Positions 6,629-60,262 of a stretch of DNA of 64,000 nt are shown here, piece after piece. Positions within the stretch are counted from its first letter, which is position 1; each line of letters opens with the position of its first letter. The position numbers and the translations under genes were made by a program. The notes under the pieces were generated by a model that saw nothing but the letters and a program-made list of their open reading frames with translations, did not search any database and had not been told where the DNA came from. This DNA comes from Neoechinorhynchus agilis (Eukaryota; Animalia; Acanthocephala): NCBI GenBank assembly GCA_051530055.1, contig CM121341.1, positions 5,062,784-5,126,783 on the forward strand, given 5' to 3'.

Positions 6629-6636
6629 TAGCCCCC

Positions 6637-10075: not shown

Positions 10076-10079
10076 CAAT

Positions 10080-35388: not shown

Positions 35389-35649
35389 TAAACAAAAAAA
35401 ACGAGAGAAATTTGTGTAAAATCATGTGAAGATTGTCAGGGAATAAAATTGCATTACGCGAAATGTGCTCTTTTTCAAACAAAAACCCAAGGTCTTTCAG
35501 TTTTAGCGAACTTAGAACATTTAGTTGGGTCGATTTGATAGCTTTTGCAGTCTTTTTGTTCGTTGATTCAGGCAGCGAACAGGTACCCCTCAATGGTTTC
35601 AAACAATTTCTTTTGGGACTCACCCCTGGTAGCGAGAATTCATAACTCT

Positions 35650-36330: not shown

Positions 36331-37820
36331 TGTGAATGATCTAACTCTATCTATTTTATGTCCGAAAAACAATAATCTAAACAACGTTTTCGTTAATAGA
36401 AGCTAATCTATAATTGTCTTATTCGATTTTGGATGAAACTAAAAAGCCGACGAATGGATCTGATTAAAAAATCTGAATCAATAAAACCGGCTTGCCATTA
36501 AATAAAGAAGCATTTAAAGAATTATTGCGTCCACGCATTTAGTTTTTCGTAGTTTCCATAAAAATGGCTTCTGCTCTTAAAATGCCAGCGTATGGACAAT
36601 CTTGAATAGCTCTGGCCAAAATTGTTCAATACTAGACTCCCCAACTGAACAAGAATCCATTGAGTAAAAAAATGGAAAGAATAAACAGTAATAGATATTG
36701 TGGGAAGTATAGAAAGCCGATTGCCAAAGTTACTTTTTTTACGATTAGAGCGCAATATCAGACAAGTGCAAGTCAACAAAAAAACGCAATAAAGACACAT
36801 GACAACAACGAATCGAACAAGACAATTATTATATACACTAACCAAGAAAACGACTGCAGAAGCTTTCAAACAACATCGCCCTGATTTTCGAGGCACCTGC
36901 CTTCAAGAAAAAGCCACTTAAGACGTCAGGTTTTGGTCAACTTCTGCCACGAACAATTCGGATCAGTTCGTCGTGGGGTTAAATCTTTGCAACTAGTTGC
37001 AGGGCCTTCTTTGCAAAGAAAACTATGTGAGAGAAGTCAAAACAAAAAGGATTCATAGGTGCACCATTCGTCGATGATGATTTATTCACTGCAATTAACA
37101 ATCTGATTAATAGAGCTGCCCCCAAAAAACCTCGAGTGTTGTATCTAAACGACGAATGCTAAATCATTAAGATCCATGGTTAAGAAACGAGATTAACATA
37201 ATTCCCTGCAGCGAATGCATTAAATCCTACGTAGGCCAAACAAACAATTTTGAAAGAAGAACCAAAGAGCAGAAATATGCGCTCTGAGGACCAGCGACGT
37301 GTTAAAAATCAATGGAAAACGCAAGGAACGGATACATTTTCGCTGAACTTCGGGTATAGCGATCCCGAGCGCACTCGAGCCCAATATTTCAAATATAATT
37401 ATATCATCCCGAAATATATTCTCTGAAGATTATTAATGTCCAAAATCGATATGCAGCCTTATTTTAAAAGTATTGAGGATTAAGCGAGTAAATGACGCGA
37501 CCTGGATCATAAAATTTATTAAATTATTTGATTTAATGTTCTCAAAAACGTTTTTCTCGTTATTTTTGAATGGGTCATTGGAACGTTGATTTTTTCGGTT
37601 CAACATAGAAACTCGCTCCGATTAATCGAAAACTGAGAGTTCTTAAAGTCTCACTAATTATCTCACTTGTTTTCGATTAGGCCAAATAACAAACAGATTT
37701 AATAGGCGAAACTGTTGTTCAAAATACAAAATAGCAAACAACATTTGCAACGAAAAAACCGATTATGGTTGCGGTGAGCGGTTGAAAAGAGACAAAGAAA
37801 CACAGCGATAAGAGAAAGCA

Positions 37821-38800
37821 ATGATGTCTCAAACTAAATGCAAAGAATCTCCAGTAAAGAAAACTACCCTTGAGGATTTATTTACCGCCCTGAAACTAAA
37901 TGCAGATGAGATGTTTGTTATAAGAAATGAAGAAATGGCTGAGAAACTCATTCGAGAAATACTCAAAAGGAATATCACAGCTTCTGATATAAAGGAATTG
38001 GATATCGAATATTTTATAAGAAGCTCAGTGCTGATGACGAGAGCGACGATCTTCTTGATTTGATAATAGAATTGTTAAACCGTATTGAAGAAGTGTTAGA
38101 CGAAAGAGAGAAAGGTTTCTCCAGCCCGGATATTTGCATAAAACAAACGGAGAGTAAGGAGATAACGACCTCGGAGCTCAGGAAAAACGATACAGGGAGC
38201 ATTTTAGAAGAAGCGATCGAGATTCCACTTCCTGATGATGAAGAGGAATCATTTGAAGAGTTCCTAAGAAATTCCTTCGAATACTTGCGTCCGGGTGAAA
38301 TTGCTATGCAGAATTCCGCGTTTAAAATTAGTGCACCACGGCAAAGTTCCATTGATGATTTCAACGGAATTCGAATGATCCGTAGTCCAAAAGATCGAAT
38401 GGCATCATCAGGGCCGAGAGATAAAAGAGAAATGGCTCAAAAGCGTCAATGTCCATTAAACACGACGTTTCCAGATATTAGAACTTTGCCAGTGAAGCGT
38501 CCTCATATTGAATCGTTCATAAACTGTGAGGATCAAATGATTCCTAATTGGTTAAATCCATTAACCTTCCCAGAATCCAATAGTCGGTGTTCAAGGTCAA
38601 AACCGACTCAATTATCGACAACGAACATTGATTCCACCAATCGAAGACTTTTGCATGGAACCAAACGTCCATCAACGGACGAGGAATGCCCGTCAAATGG
38701 TTCCAAGCATCGTATCCTGAATGCGGACGTCAATGAACAAACAACACCGAAATTGGCATTGCTTCCATTTGTAATTGATGGAGAAATTGTGTATTTGTAA
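37821..38800 (+). pseudogene. Orphan family A, copy 1; one-base frameshift at about 38022
   Basis: ORFs 37821-38063 and 38060-38800 together equal the intact 49166-50146 protein. Confidence 0.75.
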
Positions 38801-39209
38801 TCTTTGTTAGAAATTTAGAAAAGTTTTCTTAATTTTAAAGAAGTGAACTTTGTTTCATTTTTTAATGTGTATCGGAAATATAGCTAATTTTTTTGAATTG
38901 TCGTCATTTATTGTTGTTAGCTTCAAATGAGCGCCGCAGTCATCATTACGCTGCCAACATTCAGTTTTGTAGAAAATTTAAAAGCAACTTTGAGAAAGTC
39001 GTAAAAGTTTGGACTTCCGAAATCAATCGGATTCAATTAGTTTAAAATTTAGCCCACATAAAAAATGAGCACGAACAATTCAATGTTTAAACGTGTGATT
39101 ATTTCAACATTTCGGTTTGACCCTTGAATTGGTAATAAATTGACGGAATAAAGGAATCAATACCGAAATGTCAACTTATTTGGCGCACACACACAAACCA
39201 TCGAGCAAC

Positions 39210-39904
39210 TTAAGTATCCAGTAATGATCTAACAAGCCTTCTCATTTCATTTAGACTGGTTTTTTCATCTTTGTGATCGTTATGCCAATCTCGTTTTGGA
39301 ACCTTTTCGGTCTTAACTTCTCCATCTTGTTCGAACCAACCGAGCTGCTTGATAACTAAAAAAGCGGATTGTTCGTCATTTGGACGTAATCGATTGAACT
39401 TACATTTTTGGCCATCATCAACCGATATTCCGAGATATTCGGAAATTTTGTTAACGGAAAAACTAAGTTCGTCTTCTTTAAGCCTCGATAAAAACCGTTC
39501 TCTGTATGTGTCTAAGAAGATTTCTAAAAAAACCATAGAACAGAAAGCATCTCACCCTTCAGTAAAGTACTACTACTTTGAATCGAATTAATAATTTCTA
39601 ATGAACCCAAGAAATCAGCCAAAGCCCATTTTTTTCCAAATTCGTTTAATCTGTTCAACACATCGTCCCCGATTCTCTTTTTTAGCATTGCGAAATTACC
39701 ACTCAAAGAAATGAAGTTATTCTATTTTGCTAAAAGCAAAATTTAAACCTATTCTCAGTGAGTATACACAAAACTCCCAATTCAAATTGTTCCATTTCGC
39801 TAAGATCGTCCTGTTGAGGCTACCGAACAAACTTTTTATAACGTCAATCAAACCGTCAAATACTTCATCTCGAGCTCATCGATACGTTCTGCGACGTTCG
39901 ACAT
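39210..39904 (-). CDS. COPS8: COP9 signalosome subunit 8-like, left-arm copy
   Basis: Mirror of 48062-48756 with the same length and splice sites. Confidence 0.7.
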
Positions 39905-41066
39905 CTACAAAGCGTGATATAGACTTATTTTTTCGCCAAGAACCACGATTTTAACGGTCAGAATCGTCAAAAATTCACTTTTGATCGTTTGGACACGCGC
40001 TACCATCTATGGAATAAGTTAAAAATTGTGTTTTTCGATTGAGGATTCCATATTGGAAACCTAGCCGTCACAATTCAGTTATCCCTGTAATAACTTTTCT
40101 GACATCTCTTGTTTAAAATTATGGCTAAATGTTTGAAGCATTGGATCTTAACGGGTTTCAGAGTGCCCTGTAAAAGTTTCGAGGAATTTACTTCAATTTT
40201 ATTTGACTTTAAATGAAAATCAAAGTTTAGTGTCTTGAAAGTGGACGTCCGGGAGACGCCGATTCATGTTCCCAATAACTTTTTACCCCACATGAACCTT
40301 TGCGAATCGAACGGCAAGCGTCCGGGTGGTTTGGGAGTTTTTCCCTCGGTCCGACGGAAATGGCCCATCGGCCAAATCGAACGCCAATATTGCGAAGAAT
40401 GACCCGGTCCATAGATTTCAACGTTTTCCTCCTTTAGAGCGGAGACCGGCGATGAAATTCAATAGCGAAATCTTAAGCCCTACGAAGATTATCACGAAGG
40501 ATCTTCGCTCGGCAGCATTTCTCCAGAATATTAGAAATCCGGCGAGAATAGCTTTTGGGGATGATTGCGGAGCTGAATTTAGTGATTTTTTTGAGAAATA
40601 AAATTTTAAGTGATTGGAAATAAGTCTCATGGTTAAATCGTGAATATTATGAATTATTGCAATTTTTTCCAATTCGCCTGTTTTGTTCGTTAGGAAGTTG
40701 TTCAACAGATTTGGAAAATCTAAGGTCTTTCAAACCCCGTGAAGTCAAATATTTTTATTGAAGAATCAGCGATTCATGAAGCAATAGAGGATAAAGATGT
40801 TTCTACAGTGTGCCCAGAGAATAAGTGTAAAAAATTGAATAAAACATTTTCTATTAAACCTAAAGATATTCCCTCGAAATGCAGAAATTACAAAGAAATG
40901 ATTCATTTCCATCTCGAAAACAATTGACTGAACAAAGCCAACGAAAAGGTCGAAAATTTTCAAGATAAATCTCTTTTCATAATCAAACATCGCTAATTTA
41001 AACTTAAACAGAAATTGCAAGCTAGTGACCGATACACCTTCAAGGTCAAAAGAACGCCAAACTTGT

Positions 41067-42582
41067 TTAATTTTGGGAAGGCGGCGAATCATTCGGCTCC
41101 GTTCGTTGCGGGTTGCAATCTAGGCTTTGAACAGCGCTTTTTGCTATTTTAGAAGGACGATCGTCGCTTGGTAGTGGACGCTTCTTTTCTTGCGTTGTTT
41201 CCTGGACACTTGAGTCAGTATTTAGTTGCGATGTTTGATTGGATATCGTAGCTCTTAAATCTGATTGGTTTGTGGGAACTGTGGCCGGAACGTTACCACG
41301 AGACCACCGATATGGAGGGAATCGATACGAGTTCTTGTTGAAAATCTTCGTCCTAAAAGGTATCTAGCAATTTTTTCTCAACGTTTGGGCTAATTTAGCT
41401 GGATCGTTTTGAAGTTGCTCTGTAGTCAAAGTCACTGGATCTGGTGGATCTTGATTATTCTTGGCAAGAGATTGTTCAAGGTGCTGATCAGTATCTAGAT
41501 TTCCACTAAGTTCGGCAGTTATTGGTCTCTTCGTAATGGTCGAGGTCGTAGAGGAATCATTGATCTTTGAATTGGGATAATGGCGATCGGGTGGAGGAGA
41601 TCGTAATTGGCGATCAGGCTCATGCGTACTTGGTGGATATCGCGTCAAAATCGGTCCTGATGGATTTGGTATTCGTACCGGTTCAACGAATTGGCTATCA
41701 GCCATTACCGATGTGAATGCAGGAGTGGTCTGAGCTACTGGATATTGAATATTGGGAGCGAATTGTCTTCTATAATGGCTGTCGGACCCATTTCTGCGAT
41801 TACCAATGACCTCAATATTCGGTATTCTTGATGCGGTACCAGCTTCAATATGTGGACGTTTCGCCATCAAAGTCCCACATCGTGCAGCATTTTCGTAGTT
41901 CGATCGCTTCATTGAATTGATCGGCTCATTTGGTCGAACGAATTCAGAGTTCGGTACCATCGAAGCGGGCTGTATGGTTCGCATATTGTAATTAACAGGA
42001 ATTGGTTTTTGCTCGACAGCATTACGTTGAAAGTTGACTGGAAATTCATTTGTGGATCTGGTACAACAGAACGCTGTAGATTCCTTATTGGAAGGAATCG
42101 GACACCTGAGTGCTTGTCTGATTGATTCATCGATTTTATATTGTTTTGGTGCAGGAGCTGTAGCTCGTTTCTTAGATTTTGAAGCTCCGCCCTCATCAGG
42201 AAGCGGAACTTCTACAGCCGCTTTAAATTTTCGTTCAGCACCCACCTCCTCGTCTGGTGCTCTGGTTCCGACGATTTTTTGGTTACGTGATTTTGGTTTT
42301 TCGTTTATTGCTTCCTGAATTTTATCCACCACCTCGCAGTAATCTGCGGATTGATCACTTACTGCATTCGCCAGCAAATTTCTCAAAGTACGCAGCAAAA
42401 TGGAACCGCGCACATCACTCTTCGAAATGTCTCGTTTCATCATCTCTTCAAGGAGTTTCCTCAGCAATCGCGGCATCCGTAACTCGGTATCCACAGGTGA
42501 CATTAATCCTCAAAGTGGCCAGGAGATCGCTCATTGGAGCAGTTTTAAATGCTGATTCATTGTACGTTATTTTACTTACCAT
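41067..42582 (-). pseudogene. Orphan family B, copy 1; several indels versus the intact copy
   Basis: Indels at about 41370, 42330-42360 and 42460 break the frame relative to 45380-46897. Confidence 0.75.
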
Positions 42583-42864
42583 TTTTCTGTTAAAATGATC
42601 CATTGCCCGTTTGATCGTCGACGGTAAAGGACAACCTTAACGGGAGAGGGGGTCCGTGAACCGTGAAATCGGTTGATAAATCAATGAAAAAAAACAAAGA
42701 GATCTTTGGGCAACTAATGGAGAAATCGACCTTGCTATTAGGAATAAATAATGAGCCAAAATAAAGGGTGATAATATTTTCGTGCTTCATATCAGATAAA
42801 CATTCTGAAAACATCTTTAATACCGAGAATTTGGCTGATTTTAAGGTCGCCAGTTGTTTTCCAT

Positions 42865-44278
42865 TAGGCCAAATAACAAACAGATTTAATAGGCGAAACT
42901 GTTGTTCAAAATACAAAATAACAAACAACATTTGCAACGAAAAAACCGATTATGGTTGCGGTGAGCGGTTGAAAAGAGACAAAGAAACACAGCGATAAGA
43001 GAAAGCAATGATGTCTCAAACTAAATGCAAAGAATCTCCAGTAAAGAAAACTACCCTTGAGGATTTATTTACCGCCCTGAAACTAAATGCAGATGAGATG
43101 TTTGTTATAAGAAATGAAGAAATGGCTGAGAAACTCATTCGAGAAATACTCAAAAGGAATATCACAGCTTCTGATATAAAGGAATTGGATATCGAATATT
43201 TTATAAGAAGGCTCAGTGCTGATGACGAGAGCGACGATCTTCTTGATTTGATAATAGAATTGTTAAATCGTATTGAAGAAGTGTTAGACGAAAGAGAGAA
43301 AGGTTTCTCCAGCCCGGATATTTGCATAAAACAAACGGAGAGTAAGGAGATAACGACCTCGGAGCTCAGGAAAAACGATACAGGGAGCATTTTAGAAGAA
43401 GCGATCGAGATTCCACTTCCTGATGAAGAGGAATCATTTGAAGAGTTCCTAAGAAATTCCTTCGAATACTTGCGTCCGGGTGAAATTGCTATGCAGAATT
43501 CCGCGTTTAAAATTAGTGCACCACGGCAAAGTTCCATTGATGATTTCAACGGAATTCGAATGATCCGTAGTCCAAAAGATCGAATGGCATCATCAGGGCC
43601 GAGAGATAAAAGAGAAATGGCTCAAAAGCGTCAATGTCCATTAAACACGAAGTTTCCAGATATTAGAACTTTGCCAGTGAAGCGTCCTCATATTGAATCG
43701 TTCATAAACTGTGAGGATCAAATGATTCCTAATTGGTTAAATCCATTAACCTTCCCAGAATCCAATAGTCGGTGTTCAAGGTCAAAACCGACTCAATTAT
43801 CGGCAACGAACATTGATTCCACCAATCGAAGACTTTTGCATGGAACCAAAACGTCCATCAACGGACGAGGAATGCCCGTCAAATGGTTCCAAGCATCGTA
43901 TCCTGAATGCGGACGTCAATGAACAAACAACACCGAAATTGGCATTGCTTCCATTTGTAATTGATGGAGAAATTGTGTATTTGTGATCCTTGTTAGAAAT
44001 TTAGAAAAGTTTTCTTAATTTTAAAGAAGTGAACTTTGTTTCATTTTTTAATGTGTATCGGAAATATAGCTAATTTTTTTGAATTGTCGTCATTTATTGT
44101 TGTTAGCTTCAAATGAGCGCCGCAGTCATCATTACGCTGCCAACATTCAGTTTTGTAGAAATCTTTTAAGCAACTTTGAGAAAGTCGTAAAAGTTTGGAC
44201 TTCCGAAATCAATCGGATTCAATTAGTTCAAAATTTAGCCCATATAAAAAATGAGCACGAACAATTCAATGTTTAAAC
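42865..44278. repeat. Direct repeat (about 1.41 kb) of 37678-39090 inside the palindrome spacer
   Basis: Match from ttaggccaaataac to caatgtttaaac. Confidence 0.92.
43008..43986 (+). pseudogene. Orphan family A, copy 2; one-base insertion at about 43850 alters the C-terminus
   Basis: Nearly identical to copy 3 up to LLHGTK, then shifts (ggaaccaaaacg versus ggaaccaaacg). Confidence 0.7.
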
Positions 44279-45379
44279 CTATAATGGACGTTTCAAGAGT
44301 TTAAATAGTAGAAAATTTACACGAAACTTTGAGAAAATCGTACAAGACTCTCCGAAATATCGGATTCAATAGCCGTTAAAGAGCTCGATAATTCAAATTT
44401 GTTGGTTTGGTCTTCGTTCGATAGAGAACGTTTTATTGGAGAAATTCACTGGTATCGGTACTTCGCATATCGATATTTTGAAAATAATCGATGATTCACT
44501 TCAAAAAAGGTGTTTTGAGCTTATAATTCTAAAAAATGAAGAGGATTGTCATTCATTTTTGGTATGTCATAGAGAGAATATCCTTCTGGATGATAAAGTT
44601 TGAATTGTGGTGATGATAATCCTCTGGTTAAAAGATATTTTATTGGTTCGCCAGAAAGCTTCATATCATTAGTCATTGTTAAAGTATTGCGAAATAACAT
44701 CGGGATCAATGGCGATAGCAGTGAAGCAAACGAGAAACTTCTAAAATATAGAAAGCTATCCATAGATTTCAACTTTTTCCTCCTTTAGAGCGGAGACCGG
44801 CGATGAAATTCATTGGTGAGATCTTGAGGCTTTTGAGGATTATCACGATCGCTCGGCAGCATTTCTCCAGAATATTAGAAATCCAGCGAGAAAATGCAGT
44901 CAGCTTTTGGGGATGACTGCGGTGCTGACTTGATTCTTTTTCCAGAATCAATATTTTTTAATATGGCAAAAAATAAAACGTATTTAGAAATTTATTAAAA
45001 TCTTAGAGAACTGACATTAATTGATGCTTCAATTCAGCTGAGAAAATATCAATCAACCATTAAAAATCGGGCGAATTATTTAATTTCAAGTTTCTCGCGC
45101 TTAAGAATTTAACGACCTTAAAATCAGCCAAATTCTCGGTATTAAAGATGTTTTCAGAATGTTTATCTGATATGAAGCACGAAAATATTATCACCCTTTA
45201 TTTGGGCTCATTATTTATTCCTAATAACAAGGTCGATTTCTCCATTAGTTGCCCAAAGATCTCTTTGTTTTTTTTCATTGATTTATCAACCGATTTCACG
45301 GTTCACGGACCCCCTCTCCCGTTAAGGTTGTCCTTTACCGTCGACGATCAAACGGGCAATGGATCATTTTAACAGAAAA

Positions 45380-46897
45380 ATGGTAAGTAAAATAACGTAC
45401 AATGAATCAGCATTTAAAACTGCTCCAATGAGCGATCTCCTGGCCACTTTGAGGATTAATGTCACCTGTGGATACCGAGTTACGGATACCGCGATTGCTG
45501 AGAAACTCCTTGAAGAGATGATGAAACGAGACATTTCGAAGAGTGATGTGCGCGGTTCCATTTTGCTGCGTACTTTGAGAAATTTGCTGGCGAATGCAGT
45601 AAGTGATCCAATCCGCAGATTACTGCGAGAATTGGTGGATAAAATTCAGGAAGCAATAAACGAAAAACCAAAATCACGTAACCAAAAAATCGTCGGAACC
45701 AGAGCACCAGACGAGGAGGTGGGTGCTGAACGAAAATTGAAAGCGGCTGTAGAAGTTCCGCTTCCTGATGAGGGCGGAGCTTCAAAATCTAAGAAACGAG
45801 CTACAGCTCCTGCGCCAAAACAATATAAAATCGATGAATCAATCAGACAAGCACTCAGGTGTCCGATTCCTTCCAATAAGGAATCTACAGCGTTCTGTTG
45901 TACCAGATCCACAAATGAATTTCCAGTCAACTTTCAACGTAATGCTGTCGAGCAAAAACCAATTCCTGTTAATTACAATATGCGAACCATACAGCCCGCT
46001 TCGATGGTACCGAACTCTGAATTCGTTCGACCAAATGAGCCGATCAATTCAATGAAGCGATCGAACTACGAAAATGCTGCACGATGTGGGACTTTGATGG
46101 CGAAACGTCCACATATTGAAGCTGGTACCGCATCAAGAATACCGAATATTGAGGTCATTGGTAATCCCAGAAATGGGTCCGACAGCCATTATAGAAGACA
46201 ATTCGCTCCCAATATTCAATATCCAGTAGCTCAGACCACTCCTGCATTCACATCGGTAATGGCTGATAGCCAATTCGTTGAACCGGTACGAATACCAAAT
46301 CCATCAGGACCGATTTTGACGCGATATCCACCAAGTACGCATGAGCCTGATCGCCAATTACGATCTCCTCCACCCGATCGCCATTATCCCAATTCAAAGA
46401 TCATCGAATCCTCTACGACCTCGACCATTACGAAGAGACCAATAACTGCCGAACTTAGTGGAAATCTAGATACTGATCAGCACCTTGAACAATCTCTTGC
46501 CAAGAATAATCAAGATCCACCAGATCCAGTGACTTTGACTACAGAGCAACTTCAAAACGATCCAGCTAAATTAGCCCAAACGTTGAGAAAAATTGCTAGA
46601 TACCTTTTAGGACGAGAGATTTTCAACAAGAACTCGTATCGATTCCCTCCATATCGGTGGTCTCGTGGTAACGTTCCGGCCACAGTTCCCACAAACCAAT
46701 CAGATTTAAGAGCTACGATATCCAATCAAACATCGCAACTAAATACTGACTCAAGTGTCCAGGAAACAACGCAAGAAAAGAAGCGTCCACTACCAAGCGA
46801 CGATCGTCCTTCTAAAATAGCAAAAAGCGCTGTTCAAAGCCTAGATTGCAACCCGCAACGAACGGAGCCGAATGATTCGCCGCCTTCCCAAAATTAA
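45380..46897 (+). CDS. Orphan family B, intact (about 505 aa): N-terminal helical domain plus a long P/S/T/N-rich disordered tail
   Basis: Uninterrupted 512-codon ORF. Confidence 0.8.
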   Translation: MVSKITYNESAFKTAPMSDLLATLRINVTCGYRVTDTAIAEKLLEEMMKRDISKSDVRGSILLRTLRNLLANAVSDPIRRLLRELVDKIQEAINEKPKSRNQKIVGTRAPDEEVGAERKLKAAVEVPLPDEGGASKSKKRATAPAPKQYKIDESIRQALRCPIPSNKESTAFCCTRSTNEFPVNFQRNAVEQKPIPVNYNMRTIQPASMVPNSEFVRPNEPINSMKRSNYENAARCGTLMAKRPHIEAGTASRIPNIEVIGNPRNGSDSHYRRQFAPNIQYPVAQTTPAFTSVMADSQFVEPVRIPNPSGPILTRYPPSTHEPDRQLRSPPPDRHYPNSKIIESSTTSTITKRPITAELSGNLDTDQHLEQSLAKNNQDPPDPVTLTTEQLQNDPAKLAQTLRKIARYLLGREIFNKNSYRFPPYRWSRGNVPATVPTNQSDLRATISNQTSQLNTDSSVQETTQEKKRPLPSDDRPSKIAKSAVQSLDCNPQRTEPNDSPPSQN

Positions 46898-48061
46898 ACA
46901 AGTTTGGCGTTCTTTTGACCTTGAAGGTGTATCGGTCACTAGCTTGCAATTTCTGTTTAAGTTTAAATTAGCGATGTTTGATTATGAAAAGAGATTTATC
47001 TTGAAAATTTTCGACCTTTTCGTTGGCTTTGTTCAGTCAATTGTTTTCGAGATGGAAATGAATCATTTCTTTGTAATTTCTGCATTTCGAGGGAATATCT
47101 TTAGGTTTAATAGAAAATGTTTTATTCAATTTTTTACACTTATTCTCTGGGCACACTGTAGAAACATCTTTATCCTCTATTGCTTCATGAATCGCTGATT
47201 CTTCAATAAAAATATTTGACTTCACGGGGTTTGAAAGACCTTAGATTTTCCAAATCTGTTGAACAACTTCCTAACGAACAAAACAGGCGAATTGGAAAAA
47301 ATTGCAATAATTCATAATATTCACGATTTAACCATGAGACGTATTTCCAATCACTTAAAATTTTATTTCTCAAAAAAATCACTAAATTCAGCGCCGCAAT
47401 CATCCCCAAAAGCTATTCTCGCCGGATTTCTAATATTCTGGAGAAATGCTGCCGAGCGAAGATCCTTCGTGATAATCCTCGTAGGGCTTAAGATTTCGCT
47501 ATTGAATTTCATCGCCGGTCTCCGCTCTAAAGGAGGAAAACGTTGAAATCTATGGACCGGGTCATTCTTCGCAATATTGGCGTTCGATTTGGCCGATGGG
47601 CCATTTCCGTCGGACCGAGGGAAAAACTCCCAAACCACCCGGACGCTTGCCGTTCGATTCGCAAAGGTTCATGTGGGTTAAAAAGTTATTGGGAACATGA
47701 ATCGGCGTGTCCCGGACGTCCACTTTCAAGACACTAAACTTTGATTTTCATTTAAAGTCAAATAAAATTGAGAAAATTCCTTGAAACTTTTACCAGGAGC
47801 GCTCTCGAAACCCGTTAAGATCCAATACTTCAAACATTTAGCCATAATTTTAAACAAGAGATGTCAGAAAAGTTATTACAGGGATAACTGAATTGTGACG
47901 GCTAGGTTTCCAATATGGAATCCTCAATCGAAAAACACAATTTTTAACTTATTCCATAGATGGTAGCGCGTGTCCAAACGATCAAAAGTGAATTTTTGAC
48001 GATTCTGACCGTTAAAATCGTGGTTCTTGGCGAAAAAATAAGTCTATATCACGCTTTGTAG

Positions 48062-48756
48062 ATGTCGAACGTCGCAGAACGTATCGATGAGCTCGAGATG
48101 AAGTATTTGACGGTTTGATTGACGTTATAAAAAGTTTGTTCGGTAGCCTCAACAGGACGATCTTAGCGAAATGGAACAATTTGAATTGGGAGTTTTGTGT
48201 ATACTCACTGAGAATAGGTTTAAATTTTGCTTTTAGCAAAATAGAATAACTTCATTTCTTTGAGTGGTAATTTCGCAATGCTAAAAAAGAGAATCGGGGA
48301 CGATGTGTTGAACAGATTAAACGAATTTGGAAAAAAATGGGCTTTGGCTGATTTCTTGGGTTCATTAGAAATTATTAATTCGATTCAAAGTAGTAGTACT
48401 TTACTGAAGGGTGAGATGCTTTCTGTTCTATGGTTTTTTTAGAAATCTTCTTAGACACATACAGAGAACGGTTTTTATCGAGGCTTAAAGAAGACGAACT
48501 TAGTTTTTCCGTTAACAAAATTTCCGAATATCTCGGAATATCGGTTGATGATGGCCAAAAATGTAAGTTCAATCGATTACGTCCAAATGACGAACAATCC
48601 GCTTTTTTAGTTATCAAGCAGCTCGGTTGGTTCGAACAAGATGGAGAAGTTAAGACCGAAAAGGTTCCAAAACGAGATTGGCATAACGATCACAAAGATG
48701 AAAAAACCAGTCTAAATGAAATGAGAAGGCTTGTTAGATCATTACTGGATACTTAA
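48062..48756 (+). CDS. COPS8: COP9 signalosome subunit 8-like (PCI), about 180 aa, 5 exons with introns of about 32-48 nt
   Basis: Spliced product ..MLKKRI..FGKKWALADF..FLDTYRERFL...ISEYLGISVDDG..IKQLGW aligns by eye with CSN8 (LWKRIP..GQRIWQRDF..LRDATRRRAF..FAAFVGLPVEEA..EQGW). Confidence 0.72.
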
Positions 48757-49165
48757 GTTGCTCGATGGTTTGTGTGTGTGCGCCAAATAAGTTGACATTT
48801 CGGTATTGATTCCTTTATTCCGTCAATTTATTACCAATTCAAGGGTCAAACCGAAATGTTGAAATAATCACACGTTTAAACATTGAATTGTTCGTGCTCA
48901 TTTTTTATGTGGGCTAAATTTTAAACTAATTGAATCCGATTGATTTCGGAAGTCCAAACTTTTACGACTTTCTCAAAGTTGCTTTTAAATTTTCTACAAA
49001 ACTGAATGTTGGCAGCGTAATGATGACTGCGGCGCTCATTTGAAGCTAACAACAATAAATGACGACAATTCAAAAAAATTAGCTATATTTCCGATACACA
49101 TTAAAAAATGAAACAAAGTTCACTTCTTTAAAATTAAGAAAACTTTTCTAAATTTCTAACAAAGA

Positions 49166-50146
49166 TTACAAATACACAATTTCTCCATCAATTACAAATG
49201 GAAGCAATGCCAATTTCGGTGTTGTTTGTTCATTGACGTCCGCATTCAGGATACGATGCTTGGAACCATTTGACGGGCATTCCTCGTCCGTTGATGGACG
49301 TTTGGTTCCATGCAAAAGTCTTCGATTGGTGGAATCAATGTTCGTTGTCGATAATTGAGTCGGTTTTGACCTTGAACACCGACTATTGGATTCTGGGAAG
49401 GTTAATGGATTTAACCAATTAGGAATCATTTGATCCTCACAGTTTATGAACGATTCAATATGAGGACGCTTCACTGGCAAAGTTCTAATATCTGGAAACG
49501 TCGTGTTTAATGGACATTGACGCTTTTGAGCCATTTCTCTTTTATCTCTCGGCCCTGATGATGCCATTCGATCTTTTGGACTACGGATCATTCGAATTCC
49601 GTTGAAATCATCAATGGAACTTTGCCGTGGTGCACTAATTTTAAACGCGGAATTCTGCATAGCAATTTCACCCGGACGCAAGTATTCGAAGGAATTTCTT
49701 AGGAACTCTTCAAATGATTCCTCTTCATCATCAGGAAGTGGAATCTCGATCGCTTCTTCTAAAATGCTCCCTGTATCGTTTTTCCTGAGCTCCGAGGTCG
49801 TTATCTCCTTACTCTCCGTTTGTTTTATGCAAATATCCGGGCTGGATAAACCTTTCTCTCTTTCGTCTAACACTTCTTCAATACGATTTAACAATTCTAT
49901 TATCAAATCAAGAAGATCGTCGCTCTCGTCATCAGCACTGAGCCTTCTTATAAAATATTCGATATCCAATTCCTTTATATCAGAAGCTGTGATATTCCTT
50001 TTGAGTATTTCTCGAATGAGTTTCTCAGCCATTTCTTCATTTCTTATAACAAACATCTCATCTGCATTTAGTTTCAGGGCGGTAAATAAATCCTCAAGGG
50101 TAGTTTTCTTTACTGGAGATTCTTTGCATTTAGTTTGAGACATCAT
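49166..50146 (-). CDS. Orphan family A, intact (326 aa)
   Basis: Uninterrupted ORF: helical N-terminus, acidic patch, disordered tail. Confidence 0.8.
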   Translation of the reverse strand: MMSQTKCKESPVKKTTLEDLFTALKLNADEMFVIRNEEMAEKLIREILKRNITASDIKELDIEYFIRRLSADDESDDLLDLIIELLNRIEEVLDEREKGLSSPDICIKQTESKEITTSELRKNDTGSILEEAIEIPLPDDEEESFEEFLRNSFEYLRPGEIAMQNSAFKISAPRQSSIDDFNGIRMIRSPKDRMASSGPRDKREMAQKRQCPLNTTFPDIRTLPVKRPHIESFINCEDQMIPNWLNPLTFPESNSRCSRSKPTQLSTTNIDSTNRRLLHGTKRPSTDEECPSNGSKHRILNADVNEQTTPKLALLPFVIDGEIVYL

Positions 50147-51633
50147 TGCTTTCTCTTATCGCTGTGTTTCTTTGTCTCTTTTCAACCGCTCACCGCAACC
50201 ATAATCGGTTTTTTCGTTGCAAATGTTGTTTGTTATTTTGTATTTTGAACAACAGTTTCGCCTATTAAATCTGTTTGTTATTTGGCCTAATCGAAAACAA
50301 GTGAGATAATTAGTGAGACTTTAAGAACTCTCAGTTTTCGATTAATCGGAGCGAGTTTCTATGTTGAACCGAAAAAATCAACGTTCCAATGACCCATTCA
50401 AAAATAACGAGAAAAACGTTTTTGAGAACATTAAATCAAATAATTTAATAAATTTTATGATCCAGGTCGCGTCATTTACTCGCTTAATCCTCAATACTTT
50501 TAAAATAAGGCTGCATATCGATTTTGGACATTAATAATCTTCAGAGAATATATTTCGGGATGATAGAATTATATTTGAAATATTGGGCTCGAGTGCGCTC
50601 GGGATCGCTATACCCGAAGTTCAGCGAAAATGTATCCGTTCCTTGCGTTTTCCATTGATTTTTAACACGTCGCTGGTCCTCAGAGCGCATATTTCTGCTC
50701 TTTGGTTCTTCTTTCAAAATTGTTTGTTTGGCCTACGTAGGATTTAATGCATTCGCTGCAGGGAATTATGTTAATCTCGTTTCTTAACCAAGGATCTTAA
50801 TGATTTAGCATTCGTCGTTTAGATACAACACTCGAGGTTTTTTGTGGGCAGCTCTATTAATCAGATTGTTAATTGCAGTGAATAAATCATCATCGACGAA
50901 ATGGTGCACCCGAGGAGGAGGTGTTCTTCATCAATAATTTTCCTTCCTTCATCGGGGTATTTCGTCCCCTTTTCGCCATGAGTCATCGGTTATTGTGGAT
51001 TTTAAACTCTTTGACCCACTCCAAACAGGGATTCTTGCCCAAAGTCCACTATACCATCTCTAAACAACTTTATAAAATGCACAAACTGTTCCATTTTTTC
51101 AGTTTAATCCAATTATTTAATTATTTTTAAGTTTTTAAGCGTTGAAGTGAACATTGCTTACACGGCTGATTTCTTGGCCACAACACAATCAAACCGATAT
51201 CTTGGATCAACCAATCTTTTCGCGTCATTTCTGTTTAAACCGACCGGTCCAACGATTATTAGTTATTCCATCAAATTGTTCCTTCGAGTTGATCTGTATT
51301 CTCCATGTCGAATTGTTACACACTCGAACTTTATTATTGAACTCTTCATTGCGAATTTCTAAGACTTCAGCCTCCTTCTCAAGCATTGTTTTGGGAGGAA
51401 AAATACAAGAAAGCTTTGTGTTATCGAAAAAGTTCTTTAATTACGAGAATAGATATTGATTTATTAATTCCCAATATTTCGTCTGTTTCGTCGGACGTCT
51501 TCAGGTTCCTGGTAAAAAAACTAAATATCTATTAAAATATATAAATTACACTCGAGATTCAAAAATAAGAAAAAAAGGTTTAATAAACATTTAAAGTCTG
51601 TGGTGAATATACTCGCCCGGTTAACGATTCTAC

Positions 51634-51928: not shown

Positions 51929-52297
51929 TCAAATGAACGCCTTCGACCACTCGTTCAAGGCATAGGCACAGTTATTCGCGTTTTTCTTTGTTGAACCAAA
52001 TTCTTCCATGAGCCATTCAGTAAAAGCTTCAGAATCCTTTTTCAACAATAAAAATTGGCCCAGAAGCATGTAAGCCTTTTCGAACCCAAGTTTAGTTAAT
52101 TTTGAGCCGGTCACTTCACCGATGCCCGGAACACTCGTAACGTCTTTATCCGCTAACGGTTCGCAAATGAATTCATCGTGCTTTTTCGAGGTTGATTTTA
52201 TAACTGGACTCAACATTTGCTCACTGGATGAGTCCATCGGACCCGACGAAATCGAATAAGACGAGTTAAATGAACGTTCCATCAAATGATGTTTCAC
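51929..52297 (-). CDS. BANF1: Barrier-to-autointegration factor (start codon uncertain)
   Basis: STSKKHDEFICEP..VPGIGEVTG..GFEKAYMLLGQFLLLKKD..F.EWL..C..AL.EW..F. Confidence 0.95.
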   Translation of the reverse strand: MKHHLMERSFNSSYSISSGPMDSSSEQMLSPVIKSTSKKHDEFICEPLADKDVTSVPGIGEVTGSKLTKLGFEKAYMLLGQFLLLKKDSEAFTEWLMEEFGSTKKNANNCAYALNEWSKAFI

Positions 52298-52358: not shown

Positions 52359-54407
52359 ATGACGTTTCAGTTGGGAAAAACAACGTTCTGCCACGCGTCC
52401 ATCGGTTTGTGTCGTCGTCTGTGTCCATGGCAGAGAATCCTGATTTGTTTGGTGATTGTTTCGTTGATTTCGGCTCCTTTTTTTCATTGGTCCAAAAATT
52501 CCTGGTCACTTTTGAGGATAAGCCACATTCAGAACTTTCACGAATCTTATCAAACTCACAAGAAAACTAGTGCCTTTCAGCTCCATTCGACGTTATTTGG
52601 TTCATTGACCACTGAACAAAGTAAACTTTGCGGCTTTCCATCATCGTGAGTATCCTTTTCCCCATACTGCGCTTTTTCGAACAAAATTTACATAATTTAA
52701 ATTGATAATGATTGTATTTTGTTCGAAAAAGCTGTTTTTTGCACGAAATATTTTTGAAATTCCTTTTATTCTCGTTTCTCCGGTCAGGGGTTCGATTCCT
52801 TCAAAGACCATTTATTCTAAAATTGTTCTTTTAAAGTGGAATCATTCTTCTTGAATGAAAACGTGAATACTTTCACGATTTTTAATAGTGAAAACAACAC
52901 GTCTTTGAGATTCCTTTTATTCGTTTGCCAGGTCAGGGGTTCGATTCCTTCAAAGACCATTTAATCTAAAATTGTTCTTTGAAAGTGGAATCATTTTTCT
53001 TGAATGAAAACGTGAATACTTTCACCCTTTTTAATAGTGAAAACAACACGTCTTTGAGATTCCTTTTATTCGTTTGCCAGGTCAGGGGTTCGATTCCTTC
53101 AAAGACCATTTAATCTAAAATTGTCCTTTAAAAGTGGAATCATTTTTCTTGAATGAAAGCGTGAATACTTTCACCCTTTTTAATAGTGAAAGAAGAACAC
53201 GTTTTTGAGATTCCTTTTATTCGTTTGCCCGGTCAGGGGTTCGATTCCTTCAAAGACCATTTATTCTAAAATTGTTCTTTAAAAGTGGAATCATTTTTCT
53301 TGAATGAAAACGTGAATACTTTCACGATTTTTAATAGTGAAAACAACACGTCTTTGAGATTCCTTTTATTCGTTTGCCAGGTCATGGGTTCGATTCCTTC
53401 AAAGACCATTTATTCTAAAATTGTTCTTTAAAAGTGGAATCATTTTTCTTGAATGAAAACGTGAATACTTTCACCCTTTTTAATAGTGAAAACAACACGT
53501 TTTTGAGATTCCTTTTATTCGTTTGCCAGGTCAGGGGTTCGATTCCTTCAAAGACCATTTATTCTAAAATTGTTCTTTAAAAGTGGAATCATTTTTCTTG
53601 AATGAAAACGTGAATACTTTCACGATTTTTAATAGTGAAAACAACACGTCTTTGAGATTCCTTTTATTCGTTTGCCAGGTCAGGGGTTCGATTCCTTCAA
53701 AGACCATTTATTCTAAAATTGTCCTTTAAAAGTGGAATCATTTTTCTTGAATGAAAACGTGAATACTTTCACCCTTTTTAATAGTGAAAGAACAACACGT
53801 TTTTGAGATTCCTTTTATTCGTTTGCCAGGTCAGGGGTTCGATTCCTTCAAAGACCATTTATTCTAAAATTGTCCTTTAAAAGTGGAATCATTTTTCTTG
53901 AATGAAAACGTGAATACTTTCACCCTTTTTAATAGTGAAAACAACACGTCTTTGAGATTCCTTTTATTCGTTTGCCAGGTCAGGGGTTCGATTCCTTCAA
54001 AGACCATTTATTCTAAAATTGTTCTTTAAAAGTGGAATCATTTTTCTTGAATGAAAACGTGAATACTTTCACGATTTTTAATAGTGAAAACAACACGTCT
54101 TTGAGATTCCTTTTATTCGTTTGCCAGGTCAGGGGTTCGATTCCTTCAAAGACCATTTATTCTAAAATTGTCCTTTAAAAGTGGAATCATTTTTCTTGAA
54201 TGAAAACGTGAATACTTTCACCCTTTTTAATAGTGAAAGAAGAACACGTTTTTGAGATTCCTTTTATTCGTTTGTCCTGTGTTCAGTTTTCAAACTACTC
54301 CAATGAATTCTAGTCCAAGTTCTAAAAGATTTCCTCATTTTCCCGACCGAGCAGTCAAAAGAGTTCAACGTAACTTTAGTGGGCCTCATAAGAATCTTTC
54401 ATTGTGA
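52359..54407 (+). CDS. Predicted two-exon small type-II membrane protein (52359-52645 + 54287-54407, about 135 aa)
   Basis: TM segment ILICLVIVSLISAPFF; GTGAGT donor at 52646 (phase 2) and TTCAG acceptor at 54286 give an open second exon. No recognised family. Confidence 0.35.
52770..54274 (+). repeat. Tandem repeat, 149-bp unit, 10 copies, each with a tRNA T-arm/B-box (AGGTCAGGGGTTCGATTCC)
   Basis: TTCGATTCC at about 52791, 52940, 53089 ... 54135. Confidence 0.95.
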
Positions 54408-57439: not shown

Positions 57440-57901
57440 CTAGAATCGCTCTCCTCGAATGCGGCGAGCGAGCTGTATGTCCTTGGGCATGATCGTAACG
57501 CGTTTTGCATGGATCGCGCATAGATTGGTGTCCTCGAACAAAGAGACAAGATAAGCTTCAGCAGCTTCCTGTAGAGCTCCAATAGCCGCAGACTGGAATC
57601 GCAAGTCCGTCTTGAAGTCCTGAGCGATTTCTCGTACTAGTCGTTGGAACGGCAGCTTTCGAATCAATAGTTCGGTCGATTTCTGGTAGCGTCTAATCTC
57701 ACGCAATGCAACCGTTCCTGGGCGGAACCTATGGGGTTTCTTTTGTCCTGCAGCTCCAGATACACCTGCACCACCACCACCACCAGCGGGACCACCTATC
57801 GCACCGCCCGGTGCTGTTTTACGAGCTGCTTTAGTGGCTAGCTGCTTCCTAGGGGCCTTTCCACCCGTCGACTTCTTCGCAGTTTGCTTAGTTCGAGCCA
57901 T
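57440..57901 (-). CDS. H3: Histone H3.3-like variant with a 17-aa Gly/Ala-rich tail insertion
   Basis: Canonical histone fold with the H3.3 AAIG motif; tail ..[39 protein letters not shown]; 153 aa. Confidence 0.95.
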
Positions 57902-58340
57902 GTGTCTGAAATGAGAGACGGAAGAATTCCACGCAAGTTCCGATTGAAGAGAGCAGCGCTACGAGCGGGGGAGATTGGATGAAAACGAACGAACGAACGA
58001 ACGGGTCTATATAGTGCCGAAGATCGGAAAGAATTCCAGTGTACAATGTTACACACACACACAATCCAAACGCTCACAGGATTCTGTAATGGAGGAAGAC
58101 CTGCCGTCCCAGTGACGTCACATGACAAATTTAGGATCAAATGACGCGAGCGCGCGGAATTTCCATGTCGGCGCACTGTTTAGCGAAAAATTAAGGGGTT
58201 TCGAAATGGGGATTTTTCAACCGACAACATAGAAAGTCACGAAATACGACGACGACGTAATCAAAGCCACAAAATAGAAAAAAAGAAGATCGTTTGCCAG
58301 TGTGTCGGTAAACGAAATTTTAAAAATGCGAGTCGGTGCG

Positions 58341-60262
58341 TTACGTCACAAAATTTGGCGATGAAATCCGGGGTGAAAAGAAAGAGATTTTTCTCCGTTT
58401 ATAAGCGGATCGATTATTGATGACGCATTTTTCTTCGATTTCATTACGTCACAAAATTTGGCGATGAAATTCGGGGTGAAAAGAAAGAGATTTTTCTCCG
58501 TTTATAAGCGGATCGATTATTGATGACGCATTTTTTTTGGATTTCGTTACGTCACAAAATTTGGCGATGAAATTCGGGGTGAAAAGAAAGAGATTTTTCT
58601 CCGTTTATAAGCGGATCGATTATTGATGACGCATTTTTCTTCGATTTCGTTACGTCACAAAATTTGGCGATGAAATTTGGGGTGAAAAGAAAGATTTTTC
58701 TCCGTTTATAAGCGGATCGATTATTGATGACGCATTTTTTTTGGATTTCGTTACGTCACAAAATTTGGCGATGAAATTTGGGGTGAAAAGAAAGAGATTT
58801 TTCTCCGTTTATAAGCGGATCGATTATTGATGACGCATTTTTCTTCGATTTCGTTACGTCACAAAATTTGGCGATGAAATTTGGGGTGAAAAGAAAGAGA
58901 TTTTTCTCCGTTTATAAGCGGATCGATTATTGATGACGCATTTTTTTTGGATTTCGTTACGTCACAAAATTTGGCGATGAAATTCGGGTGAAAAGAAAGA
59001 GATTTTTCTCCGTTTATAAGCGGATCGATTATTGATGACGCATTTTTTTTGGATTTCGTTACGTCACAAAATTTGGCGATGAAATTCGGGGAAAAGAAAG
59101 AGATTTTTCTCCGTTTATAAGCGGATCGATTATTGATGACGCATTTTTCTTCGATTTCATTACGTCACAAAATTTGGCGATGAAATTCGGGGAAAAGAAA
59201 GAGATTTTTCTCCGTTTATAAGCGGATCGATTATTGATGACGCATTTTTCTTCGATTTCGTTACGTCACAAAATTCGGCGATGAAATTCGGGGAAAAGAA
59301 AGAGATTTTTCTCCGTTTATAAGCGGATCGATTATTGATGACGCATTTTTTTTGGATTTCGTTACGTCACTAAATTTGGCGATGAAATTCGGGTGAAAAG
59401 AAAGAGATTTTTCTCCGTTTATAAGCGGATCGATTATTGATGACGCATTTTTCTTCGATTTCGTTACGTCACAAAATTTGGCGATGAAATTCGGGGAAAA
59501 GAAAGAGATTTTTCTCCGTTTATAAGCGGATCGATTATTGATGACGCATTTTTTTTGGATTTCGTTACGTCACAAAATTCGGCGATGAAATTTGGGGTGA
59601 AAAGAAAGAGATTTTTCTCCGTTTATAAGCGGATCGATTATTGATGACGCATTTTTCTTGGATTTCGTTACGTCACTAAATTCGGCGATGAAATTTGGGG
59701 TGAAAAGAAAGATTTTTCTCCGTTTATAAGCGGATCGATTATTGATGACGCATTTTTTTGGATTTCGTTACGTCACAAAATTCGGCGATGAAATTTGGGG
59801 TGAAAAGAAAGAGATTTTTCTCCGTTTATAAGCGGATCGATTATTGATGACGCATTTTTTTTGATTTCGTTACGTCACAAAATTTGGCGATGAAATTTGG
59901 GGTGAAAAGAAAGAGATTTTTCTCCGTTTATAAGCGGATCGATTATTGATGACGCATTTTTTTTGGATTTCGTTACGTCACAAAATTTGGCGATGAAATT
60001 CGGGGTGAAAAGAAAGAGATTTTTCTCCGTTTATAAGCGGATCGATTATTGATGACGCATTTTTTTTGGATTTCATTACGTCACAAAATTTTGCGATGAA
60101 ATTTGGGGTGAAAAGAAAGAGACTTTTCTCCGTTTATAAGCGGATCGATTATTGATGACGCATTTTTTTTGGATTTCGTTACGTCACAAAATTCGGCGAT
60201 GAAATTTGGGTGAAAAGAGGGTGATTTTTCTCCGTTTATAAGCGGATCGATTATTGATGACT
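58341..60262. repeat. Tandem repeat, about 103-bp unit, about 19 copies
   Basis: ttacgtcacaaaatttggcgatg...tgatgacgcattt recurs at 58341, 58444, etc. Confidence 0.95.

Follow-up and report, generated by a model that had tools for sequence, protein, structure and literature searches.

The TND (TFIIS N-terminal domain; PROSITE PS51319, Pfam PF08711 clan) is the fold most enriched among transcription-elongation regulators, and the reviewed proteins carry one TND together with other domains (PMC9987994). TNDs read disordered motifs as a general logic; the ligand is read through a basic surface patch of 3–5 Lys/Arg located between two shallow hydrophobic pockets, and tandem TNDs are not mentioned in the TND review (PMC9987994). 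The motifs bound by TNDs (TND-interacting motifs, TIMs) comprise a helix and an acidic linker, with or without FxGF. In TFIIS, IWS1/Spn1, Elongin A and PPP1R10/PNUTS, which are conserved across eukaryotes, a single TND is joined to other domains, and MED26 carries the domain at its very N-terminus, ahead of a long disordered region.

We compared with these proteins two genes, A and B, from Neoechinorhynchus agilis (Acanthocephala; GCA_051530055.1, CM121341.1, positions 5,062,784–5,126,783, forward). The whole stretch of DNA that was analysed, 64,000 nt, is called the window below. It is probable that A and B are intronless, fast-diverging N. agilis paralogues with a MED26-like TND and a disordered tail, belonging to a species-restricted family. 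The genes, their predicted domains and their neighbours are the following:

45359–46897, plus strand: gene B, uninterrupted copy, a 512-aa ORF (505 aa in the annotation, which starts at the Met at 45380), with a predicted N-terminal TND and a basic Pro/Ser/Arg/Asn-rich tail of ~400 aa; pI 9.5
45410–45673, plus strand: TND-like domain of B, ORF residues 18–105 (HMM envelope)
48062–48756, plus strand: gene C (right arm, between B and A), annotated 170-aa product with an intron, assigned to no family
49166–50146, minus strand: gene A, uninterrupted copy, a 326-aa ORF (annotated product 325 aa), with a predicted N-terminal TND and an acidic tail of ~225 aa; pI 5.4
49847–50116, minus strand: TND-like domain of A, residues 11–100 (five-helix AF2 model)
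51929–52297, minus strand: BAF gene (PF02961, E=1.6e-34), 1.8 kb from the start of A

The frames of A and B stay open for 326 and 512 codons in DNA of ~38% GC, and the deposited annotation has matching gene models. The original prediction had proposed a comparison of dN/dS across paralogues; between the N-domains of B and of the B-like protein P0002 we obtained dN=0.31 and dS=0.72 (omega=0.43). As far as can be judged from sequence, the long ORFs, the matching annotated models and the omega of B vs P0002 indicate that A and B are coding and under constraint.

The N-termini of A and B align, as had been claimed. BLASTP joined A 1–144 with B 8–142, ~146 N-terminal residues, at 28% identity and 55% positives (65.9 bits, E=3e-16), and the same A–B pairing was recovered by tblastn within the window. 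By these alignments A and B are diverged paralogues. Two short motifs occur in identical order in their tails:

49730–49759, minus strand: PLPD motif in A, EEAIEIPLPD
45740–45769, plus strand: PLPD motif in B, KAAVEVPLPD
49454–49471, minus strand: KRPHIE in A, residue 226
46103–46120, plus strand: KRPHIE in B, residue 249

The first of these had been described as EA(I/V)E(I/V)PLPD in both proteins; the motif is indeed common to A and B, but the pattern is one residue off for B, which reads KAAVEVPLPD. KRPHIE is present in both tails, as stated, and a common 6-mer appeared by chance in 18 of 5000 shuffles of the A and B tails. A third, weak similarity was seen near the C-termini (A 247–309 and B 440–502, E=0.002), and the short conserved motifs of the disordered tails are PLPD, KRPHIE and C-terminal KRP-type basic stretches. 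Downstream of EEAIEIPLPD, A contains an acidic run and then a predicted helix of low confidence (DDEEESFEEFLRNSFEY).

The description of A and B as orphans agrees with our database searches. Word-indexed searches of 5.8 billion proteins with A and B returned same-species proteins only, and HMMER, run exhaustively on 1.84 billion representatives, found relatives in N. agilis only; in the searched databases the family is species-restricted. The proposed amplified family of stand-alone TND proteins was also recovered, since members consisting of a TND and a disordered tail were found by HMMER in N. agilis. The A/B profile matched P0004–P0008 at E=3e-24 to 4e-4, with 2–5 matched stretches per protein. 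The single-domain members are A, B, P0002 and P0004, and the tandem members, P0005–P0008, carry 2–5 TNDs each. The family domains have diverged to 15–37% identity, the 17 other domains being 15–36% identical to that of A; of the 91 columns in their alignment, 22 have a hydrophobic residue in at least 80% of the domains, with helical periodicity; the alignment indicates a conserved buried hydrophobic core with a variable surface.

A profile of 18 family domains matched the MED26 TND (E=4.9e-6, 29.6 bits; profile 5–82 to MED26 6–83, ungapped), and the PPP1R10 TND marginally (E=0.46); hhalign gave a probability of 89.9% for the family. Neither A alone nor B alone nor the profile of the A/B/P0002/P0004 subgroup matched any TND by sequence, and for this subgroup hhalign gave P=0.087, though in the same register. 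The sequence similarity to an accepted TND is thus found via the 18-domain profile, and for A and B it is transitive, passing through the multi-repeat proteins, because A, B and the subgroup profile match no TND. The gathering threshold of PF08711 (20.6 bits) was reached by no family member; the best score was that of P0007 (16.2 bits, E=0.0096), and one of the 18 isolated domains gave a match (E=0.046). A and B themselves matched neither PF08711 nor PF11467 even at E<=10.

The N-terminal domains were also modelled. The AF2 model of A, built from A, B and P0002 only, has a pLDDT of 80–90 over residues 14–100, and that of B, built from an 18-row alignment, a mean pLDDT of 81.8; both contain five helices, and both are predictions from shallow, single-species alignments. 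The best PDB match of the A model in Foldseek was the MED26 TND (TMt 0.82, rmsd 1.2), and 19 of the first 23 PDB matches were TND-type (TNDs, IBDs, LW domains) or Pol II elongation complex chains containing them. The TND-type matches of A comprised MED26, TFIIS, PPP1R10, LEDGF, Elongin A, IWS1/Spn1 and the T. brucei LW domain, mostly with probability 0.9–1.0. The B model likewise matched best with the MED26 TND (6zv3; TM 0.80/0.80, rmsd 1.9 Å over 83 columns), followed by the LEDGF IBD, TFIIS and IWS1; for B, too, nearly all of the top PDB matches are TNDs. The Foldseek E-values were weak (0.025–1), which is to be expected for an 80-residue helical domain. In a control search against viral structures the B model gave poor matches only, with no viral structural counterpart. 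The N-terminal ~85 residues of A and B are predicted, on these models, to form a five-helix bundle of TND type; the AlphaFold and Foldseek check thus came out in favour of the TND-type fold that had been suggested.

The MED26 TND (5odd, 6zv3) ranks first in sequence, for the family profile, and in Foldseek, for the two models (TM ~0.8); it, and not the LEDGF IBD, is the nearest relative. This ranking also brings in another explanation, namely that A, B and P0004 are highly diverged MED26 co-orthologues, serving as alternative Mediator subunits with an unrecognised C-terminal docking region. The layout would fit, since the TND starts ~15 residues from the N-terminus in A/B, as in MED26, and is followed by a long low-complexity region rich in Pro/Ser/Gln/Asn. 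Many conserved metazoan genes have been lost in N. agilis, where 47% of the metazoan BUSCOs are complete (PMC12690905), and in such a genome Mediator parts could plausibly have diverged strongly. However, the Mediator-docking Med26_M/Med26_C regions were not detected in A, B or P0004–P0008 at E<=10, and the full-length MED26 chains in the PDB were unmatched by full-length B and P0004. Moreover, A, B and P0004 have tails with no likeness beyond two or three short motifs, and the tandem-repeat members resemble no Mediator subunit. A and B therefore resemble MED26 in the N-terminal TND and not in Med26_M/Med26_C, and we consider co-orthology unlikely.

The original prediction had linked A and B to retroelement integrases. 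The BAF gene that it placed about 2 kb away is indeed found at 1.8 kb from A, remains of LTR and non-LTR retroelements lie within the window, and LEDGF IBDs, several of them in lentiviral integrase complexes, are good Foldseek matches of B (TM ~0.7). A and B would then be LEDGF-IBD-like tethers or decoys for the integrases, functionally tied to the neighbouring BAF. The IBD matches are, however, explained by the TND fold that these domains have in common, with MED26 first by structure and sequence. PF11467 and PWWP were not found in A, B or their relatives at E<=10, nor was another chromatin reader or any further domain seen in these proteins, so the likeness of A/B to the LEDGF/HRP2 IBD, as judged from the models, is at the level of fold only. 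The pol of the LTR element, which spans at least 5 ORFs, lies at a distance of 36 kb, BAF is absent as a neighbour at the P0002, P0004, P0005 and P0015 loci, and no viral structural counterpart was seen in the control. The link to integrases and BAF comes down to proximity, and we regard it as extremely unlikely.

Near-identical palindromes can house ampliconic gene families, as on mammalian sex chromosomes. All window copies of A and B are located in one palindrome with arms of 5.8 kb:

37058–42849: palindrome left arm (mirrored order A, C, B), which differs from the right arm by 30 substitutions and 9 indel events
37821–38800, plus strand: interrupted copy of gene A in the left arm; 1 indel event and 2 substitutions vs the intact copy
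39210–39904, minus strand: copy of gene C in the left arm; identity with the right-arm copy 100%
41070–42603, minus strand: interrupted copy of gene B in the left arm; 6 indel events and 8 substitutions vs the intact copy
42850–45112: palindrome spacer of ~2.3 kb, with a third A-unit copy at 42851–44278
43008–43986, plus strand: gene A central copy, interrupted near the 3' end; 2 indel events (one of 3 nt) and 4 substitutions, TND intact
45113–50910: palindrome right arm (B, C, A); identity with the left arm 99.36% across 5801 columns

The locus of P0004 is also a palindrome, with arms 99.1% identical.

The window has five copies of A and B, 95–100% identical. Three of these are interrupted, and one uninterrupted copy of each gene remains. 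If the assembly described in PMC12690905 is the same as GCA_051530055.1, it was built as a hybrid of ONT R9.4 and Illumina reads from pooled worms, and the palindrome and the three interruptions could then partly be assembly error. Together with the lack of homologues found outside the species, these features would suit the view that A and B are non-functional ORFs in recently duplicated or mis-assembled DNA and that the TND likeness comes from generic amphipathic helices. We find this view very unlikely, since both long frames stay open, omega is 0.43 at a dS of 0.72 (B vs P0002, N-domain), and the 22 hydrophobic core columns are kept even at about 15–37% identity. In addition, the matches in structure and sequence are specific to TNDs and not to helical bundles at large, the viral control differs, and family members also occur in ordinary gene neighbourhoods. 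On the reading of A and B as TND paralogues, the 5.8-kb near-identical inverted duplication is gaining and losing gene copies.

The charge of the domain, counted on sequence, differs between members. The domain of A has a net charge of -13, with 3 K/R vs 9 D/E in the helix 4–5 segment; that of B has a net charge of +1, with 6 K/R in this segment; the other family domains range from -6 to +9. The TIM-like strings reported in A, EEESFEEF and DDFNGI, are present there, but they are not canonical: no family member contains an FxGF motif, and the nearest to it in A is FNGI. The idea of the A domain as a reader of acidic TIMs fits poorly with its charge, since a domain so strongly acidic would be without the basic patch that reads them. 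Because its basic residues are replaced by acidic ones, the ligand preference of A has probably changed, whereas B, with basic residues kept in helices 4–5, may still read acidic motifs.

By analogy with other TNDs, the domain would have no enzymatic role and would dock nuclear transcription factors on its surface through their short disordered motifs. The A/B proteins may then act as adaptors or competitors in Pol II initiation or elongation assemblies, and the poly-TND members as multivalent scaffolds. A bolder proposal takes the family as species-specific ampliconic TND readers or decoys that rewire or compete for the Pol II elongation motif network, possibly in the germline or in genetic conflict. 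A and B would be a co-duplicated pair in which the acidic run and hydrophobic helix of A (DDEEESFEEFLRNSFEY) dock on the basic TND of B and the charge-inverted TND of A reads basic motifs, and the 2–5-TND proteins would be the first multivalent TND scaffolds. Taken as one joint claim, this is improbable.

The family represents a burst of TND genes that is confined to one lineage, a parasite with a strongly reduced genome, and has predicted products that include a TND with a tail, a charge-inverted TND and up to five TNDs in series. If expressed and nuclear, these proteins would offer natural variants for how TND surface charge sets motif selectivity and material on what multivalent TND scaffolds do, and more than a dozen N. 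agilis 'hypothetical proteins' would be assigned a fold. Structure prediction bore out a helical pattern that had been guessed from the raw sequence, but only once the same-species paralogues had been gathered into a profile.

Among the described systems, MED26 is the closest, with the same layout of an N-terminal domain and a long disordered region as in the A/B family. Where MED26 has a basic stretch between helices 4 and 5, A has an acidic loop and most family members have neutral residues, and unlike MED26 the family is multi-copy and includes tandem arrays. The IBDs of LEDGF/p75 and HRP2 have the same five-helix fold and rank 2–9 for the B model (TM 0.66–0.71, rmsd 2.2–3.6), whereas LEDGF shows no sequence-level match to the family, which lacks its PWWP/AT-hook chromatin module. 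The palindromes resemble the mammalian ampliconic ones in their near-identical arms and multi-copy genes; they differ in size, kilobases compared with hundreds of kilobases, and in that one copy per N. agilis palindrome (window and P0004) is interrupted. The remaining TNDs, i.e. TFIIS domain I, IWS1/Spn1, Elongin A, PPP1R10/PNUTS and the T. brucei LW domain, match at the level of fold with probability 0.9–1.0. Compared with the single-TND proteins conserved across eukaryotes, the N. agilis family is species-restricted and is predicted to consist of TNDs and disorder only, with up to five TNDs in one protein.

The two neighbouring genes A and B encode proteins with an N-terminal domain followed by a disordered tail.

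49166-50146 (-): gene A, ORF of 326 aa
45359-46897 (+): gene B, ORF of 512 aa

As proteins, the N-termini of A and B align with E=3e-16 across 146 columns, of which 28% are identical and 55% positive, confirming the relationship claimed in the original prediction. The motif A[IV]E[IV]PLPD, common to both proteins, was found at the end of this alignment; the PLPD motif reported earlier is present in A and B, except that B reads AAVEV at its start, not EAVEV. Farther along, KRPHIE occurs in both tails with the order kept, and a 6-mer match arose by chance in only 18 of 5000 shuffles of the tails. A third, weak similarity (E=0.002) was seen near the C-termini. The tails are hydrophilic, rich in proline and serine, and were modelled without structure. 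The strings previously quoted from A were found in the protein, and the BAF gene reported near A was also found, 1.8 kb away.

Both genes lie in a palindrome, each arm of which carries A, C and B.

37058-42849: left arm of the palindrome
45113-50910: right arm of the palindrome
48062-48756 (+) and 39210-39904 (-): gene C, annotated 170-aa product, one intron

The arms are 99.36% identical over 5.8 kb, with 30 substitutions and 9 indel events, and within the 2.26-kb spacer the 1.43-kb A unit occurs a third time. Gene C was co-duplicated with A and B and its arm copies are 100% identical; it has no Pfam match and no family was assigned to it. A scan of all six frames of the window with the HMM of the domain detected no family members beyond the five copies of A and B. 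Only the right-arm A and the right-arm B are uninterrupted; one indel event was counted in left-arm A, two in the central A (one of 3 nt) and six in left-arm B. Some of the arm indels may be errors because of the assembly method, and only one of the nine is located in a homopolymer. For this acanthocephalan, Neoechinorhynchus agilis, a published assembly that is possibly the same as GCA_051530055.1 was made with MaSuRCA as a hybrid of Illumina and ONT R9.4 reads from ~50 pooled worms, with Hi-C scaffolding, BRAKER annotation using RNA-seq hints and just 47% complete metazoan BUSCOs (PMC12690905). Gene-level expression values for the family loci were not found in the text or one supplement of the N. 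agilis transcriptome paper. We also noticed two Ser-rich antisense ORFs of 177-178 aa opposite the 5' half of A copies, at 43016-43549 (-) and 49602-50138 (+), which most likely are not genes and merely result from the Glu/Asp/Lys-rich codon usage of A.

The N-terminal domain had been guessed to be of the TFIIS N-terminal type (TND), a five-helix domain to which the integrase-binding domain (IBD) of LEDGF also belongs. This guess is borne out by the predicted structures of A and B, both of which have five helices, and by Foldseek lists dominated by TNDs. The model of A, for which the input was A, B and the B-like protein P0002 only, had a pLDDT of 80-90 across residues 14-100, and its PDB matches down to rank 23 were nearly all TND-type domains or TND-containing chains of Pol II elongation complexes. 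The top match was MED26 (target-normalised TM 0.82, rmsd 1.2 Å, 80 columns), followed by TFIIS, PPP1R10, the LEDGF IBD, Elongin A, the T. brucei LW domain and IWS1/Spn1. Similarly, the model of B (pLDDT 81.8) matched MED26 with TM 0.80/0.80, then the LEDGF IBD, TFIIS and IWS1; a Foldseek search with it among predicted structures of viruses returned nothing meaningful. The Foldseek E-values were modest (0.03-1), which is to be expected of a small helical domain, and the evidence lies in the consistency of the match list.

In searches of Pfam at E<=10, A, B and the interrupted copies matched no TND, no IBD and no credible family, and single-sequence PDB searches with A, B and P0004, another N. 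agilis member, gave no matches. Word-indexed protein searches with A, with B and with an alignment of 18 domains returned only proteins of the same species; the alignment added no more than P0015, a piece of a degraded copy resembling P0005. When a profile of A, B and P0002 was run against 1.84 billion representatives by exhaustive HMMER, seven proteins were found, all from N. agilis: A, the interrupted B copy, P0004, P0005, P0006, P0007 and P0008. P0004 has one N-terminal domain (E=3e-24 with this profile), and the domain is present in five, four, three and two copies in P0005, P0006, P0007 and P0008, respectively. Throughout the family the annotation reads 'hypothetical protein', and nothing was recognised outside the TND: no Med26_M/C, PWWP, TFIIS central domain or zinc ribbon. 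The analysis shows a species-restricted, amplified family of paralogous TND-fold proteins.

The profile match to a TND, which failed with A and B themselves, was obtained with the 18 non-redundant domain copies, which align almost without gaps and share 22 conserved hydrophobic columns. In PDB their profile matched the human MED26 N-terminal domain with E=4.9e-6, positions 5-82 corresponding to MED26 6-83 with no gap; hhalign gave a probability of 89.9%, and the PPP1R10 TND was a marginal match. P0007 scored 16.2 bits against PF08711, below the cut-off of 20.6. No TND was matched in PDB by a profile of A, B, P0002 and P0004 only (hhalign P=0.087, register unchanged), so that in sequence terms the case for A and B is transitive and, as judged from these profiles, runs only via their repeat-bearing relatives. 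MED26 being the best match and the domain being N-terminal in both, A, B and P0004 might be diverged MED26 co-orthologues; we consider this unlikely, since the Mediator-docking region is missing and tandem-repeat members exist.

Family members at other loci of the genome were also compared.

L002 and L003 10001-11485: the two copies of P0002 (counterpart of the shared tail in B, window 45717-46824)
L006 9290-12213 and 18547-21476 (CM121341.1, about 8.98 Mb): P0004 locus, a second palindrome
L004 9992-11195: P0015 (138 aa), gene model placed on a degraded multi-TND copy resembling P0005, with matches across several frames

P0002 (494 aa) is present in two copies ~28 kb apart, about 115-165 kb from A and B and adjoining Forkhead genes. 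Over the final 1.1 kb its DNA matches that of B with 98-99% identity, but amino-acid identity in the N-domain falls to 54%; dS is 0.03 in the tail, as against dS=0.72 and dN=0.31 in the N-domain. P0002 is a mosaic, for which the best explanation is that dispersed members of the family exchanged the tail by gene conversion or recombination. The N-domain estimate of omega, 0.43, shows purifying selection on the domain. It also speaks against A and B being non-functional ORFs or an assembly artefact, as do the conserved core and the TND-specific matches, and we regard that explanation as very unlikely. There is no A copy beside the two P0002 loci; a conserved adjacency of A and B was therefore rejected.

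The P0004 palindrome has arms of 2.9 kb or more with 99.1% identity, and a 552-aa gene lies in its 6.3-kb spacer. Of the two P0004 copies, one is an uninterrupted ORF of 492 codons and the other is interrupted; the annotated length of 406 aa reflects modelling of the interruption as an intron by the annotator. We had considered P0004 as an intron-bearing parent from which A and B were copied without introns, and dropped this because the 'intron' bypasses the interruption and the mirror copy is uninterrupted. The P0005 cluster has six members at >=90% identity, one on CM121341.1 and five on another 7.8-Mb record. Since P0015 lies on a degraded multi-TND copy, the repeat-bearing branch also leaves pseudogenes. 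In the partial gene model of P0007 (ACOME3_010599), on a contig of 34 kb, residues 1-20 match part of the C-terminus of a Piwi domain (PF02171 E=0.04) and three TND repeats follow; this may be a fusion made in gene modelling or a genuine Piwi-TND neighbourhood.

The window also contains retroelements and several unrelated genes.

4400-4900 (-): Forkhead-domain gene
6637-9633 (-): LTR-retrotransposon pol, flanked by the two Forkhead-domain genes
10517-10987 (-): Forkhead-domain gene
14806-15573 (-): CBF/Mak21-domain ORF (Pfam)
27119-29062 (+): HSP70 ORF, 647 aa, intronless, identified by eye
33031-33639 (+): cyclin N-domain ORF (Pfam)
33787-34562: tandem-repeat array, unit ~50 bp
52623-54267: tandem-repeat array, unit ~149 bp
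58271-60309: tandem-repeat array, unit 101-103 bp
61043-63676: tandem-repeat array, unit 166 bp

The pol (protease, RT, RNase H, integrase) is split over at least five separate ORFs. It had been proposed that the family tethers retroelement integrases, in connection with BAF. This was not borne out and we find it extremely improbable: the IBD matches are explained by the common fold, the pol lies 36 kb away in its separate ORFs, and no BAF neighbour was present at the other family loci examined.

Most of the Forkhead/LTR block (about window 2560-11300) is repeated beside both P0002 copies, mostly at 98-99% identity (pieces 80-99%). A 544-aa ORF at 2507-4141 (-) has a partial reverse-transcriptase domain (PF00078 E=2.4e-7) and is probably the remains of a non-LTR retroelement; 35545-36054 (+) may be a related fragment, by a C-terminal likeness seen by eye. 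The 166-bp array overlaps a 146-aa ORF (63535-63975, -) without a Pfam match. A histone H3-type ORF of 153 aa (57440-57901, -; PF00125 E=2.4e-47) has a Gly/Ala-rich insertion of ~17 residues in its N-terminal tail, directly before the KKPHR stretch, so its sequence makes it an H3 variant whose K27-K36 region is altered.

By analogy with TNDs elsewhere, the proteins of this amplified TND-fold family would serve in the nucleus as modules on which disordered motifs of the Pol II machinery dock; members with one domain would be adaptors or competitors, and those with tandem domains multivalent scaffolds. The charge inversion in A would predict an altered ligand class. We hold this joint reading of fold and roles to be reasonably probable, its doubt lying mostly in function and less in fold.

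Cermakova et al. define the TND as a right-handed five-helix bundle with a conserved core. On its surface are two shallow hydrophobic pockets and 3-5 basic residues in a patch, by which it reads the acidic linker of the TIM, the disordered motif bound by TNDs; in TIMs a helix is obligate and FxGF is optional (PMC9987994). The predicted models and the alignment agree with this definition in fold and core. A basic patch in the A/B family is doubtful, judging from the residues present: MED26 has a Lys/Arg run between helices 4 and 5, whereas A has an acidic loop there. The domain of A has a net charge of -13 and a pI of 4.2, that of B is about neutral with six K/R in the helix 4-5 segment, and the other members range from -6 to +9. 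No FxGF-type motif was found across the family, including the TIM-like motif once suggested in A, where FNGI is the sole near-match. Residues 145-154 of A, after an acidic run, form a low-confidence predicted helix; the two seem to resemble a TIM in composition, and that is all.

The TND review makes no mention of tandem TNDs (PMC9987994), and our literature search found no lineage-specific TND expansions. Within the scope of one draft genome, a guess made without database searches was confirmed, and the family is a possible handle on TND selectivity. The fold is known and the family is new and unannotated, with an unusual architecture: TNDs that stand alone with a tail or follow one another up to five times, and one member whose charge is inverted.
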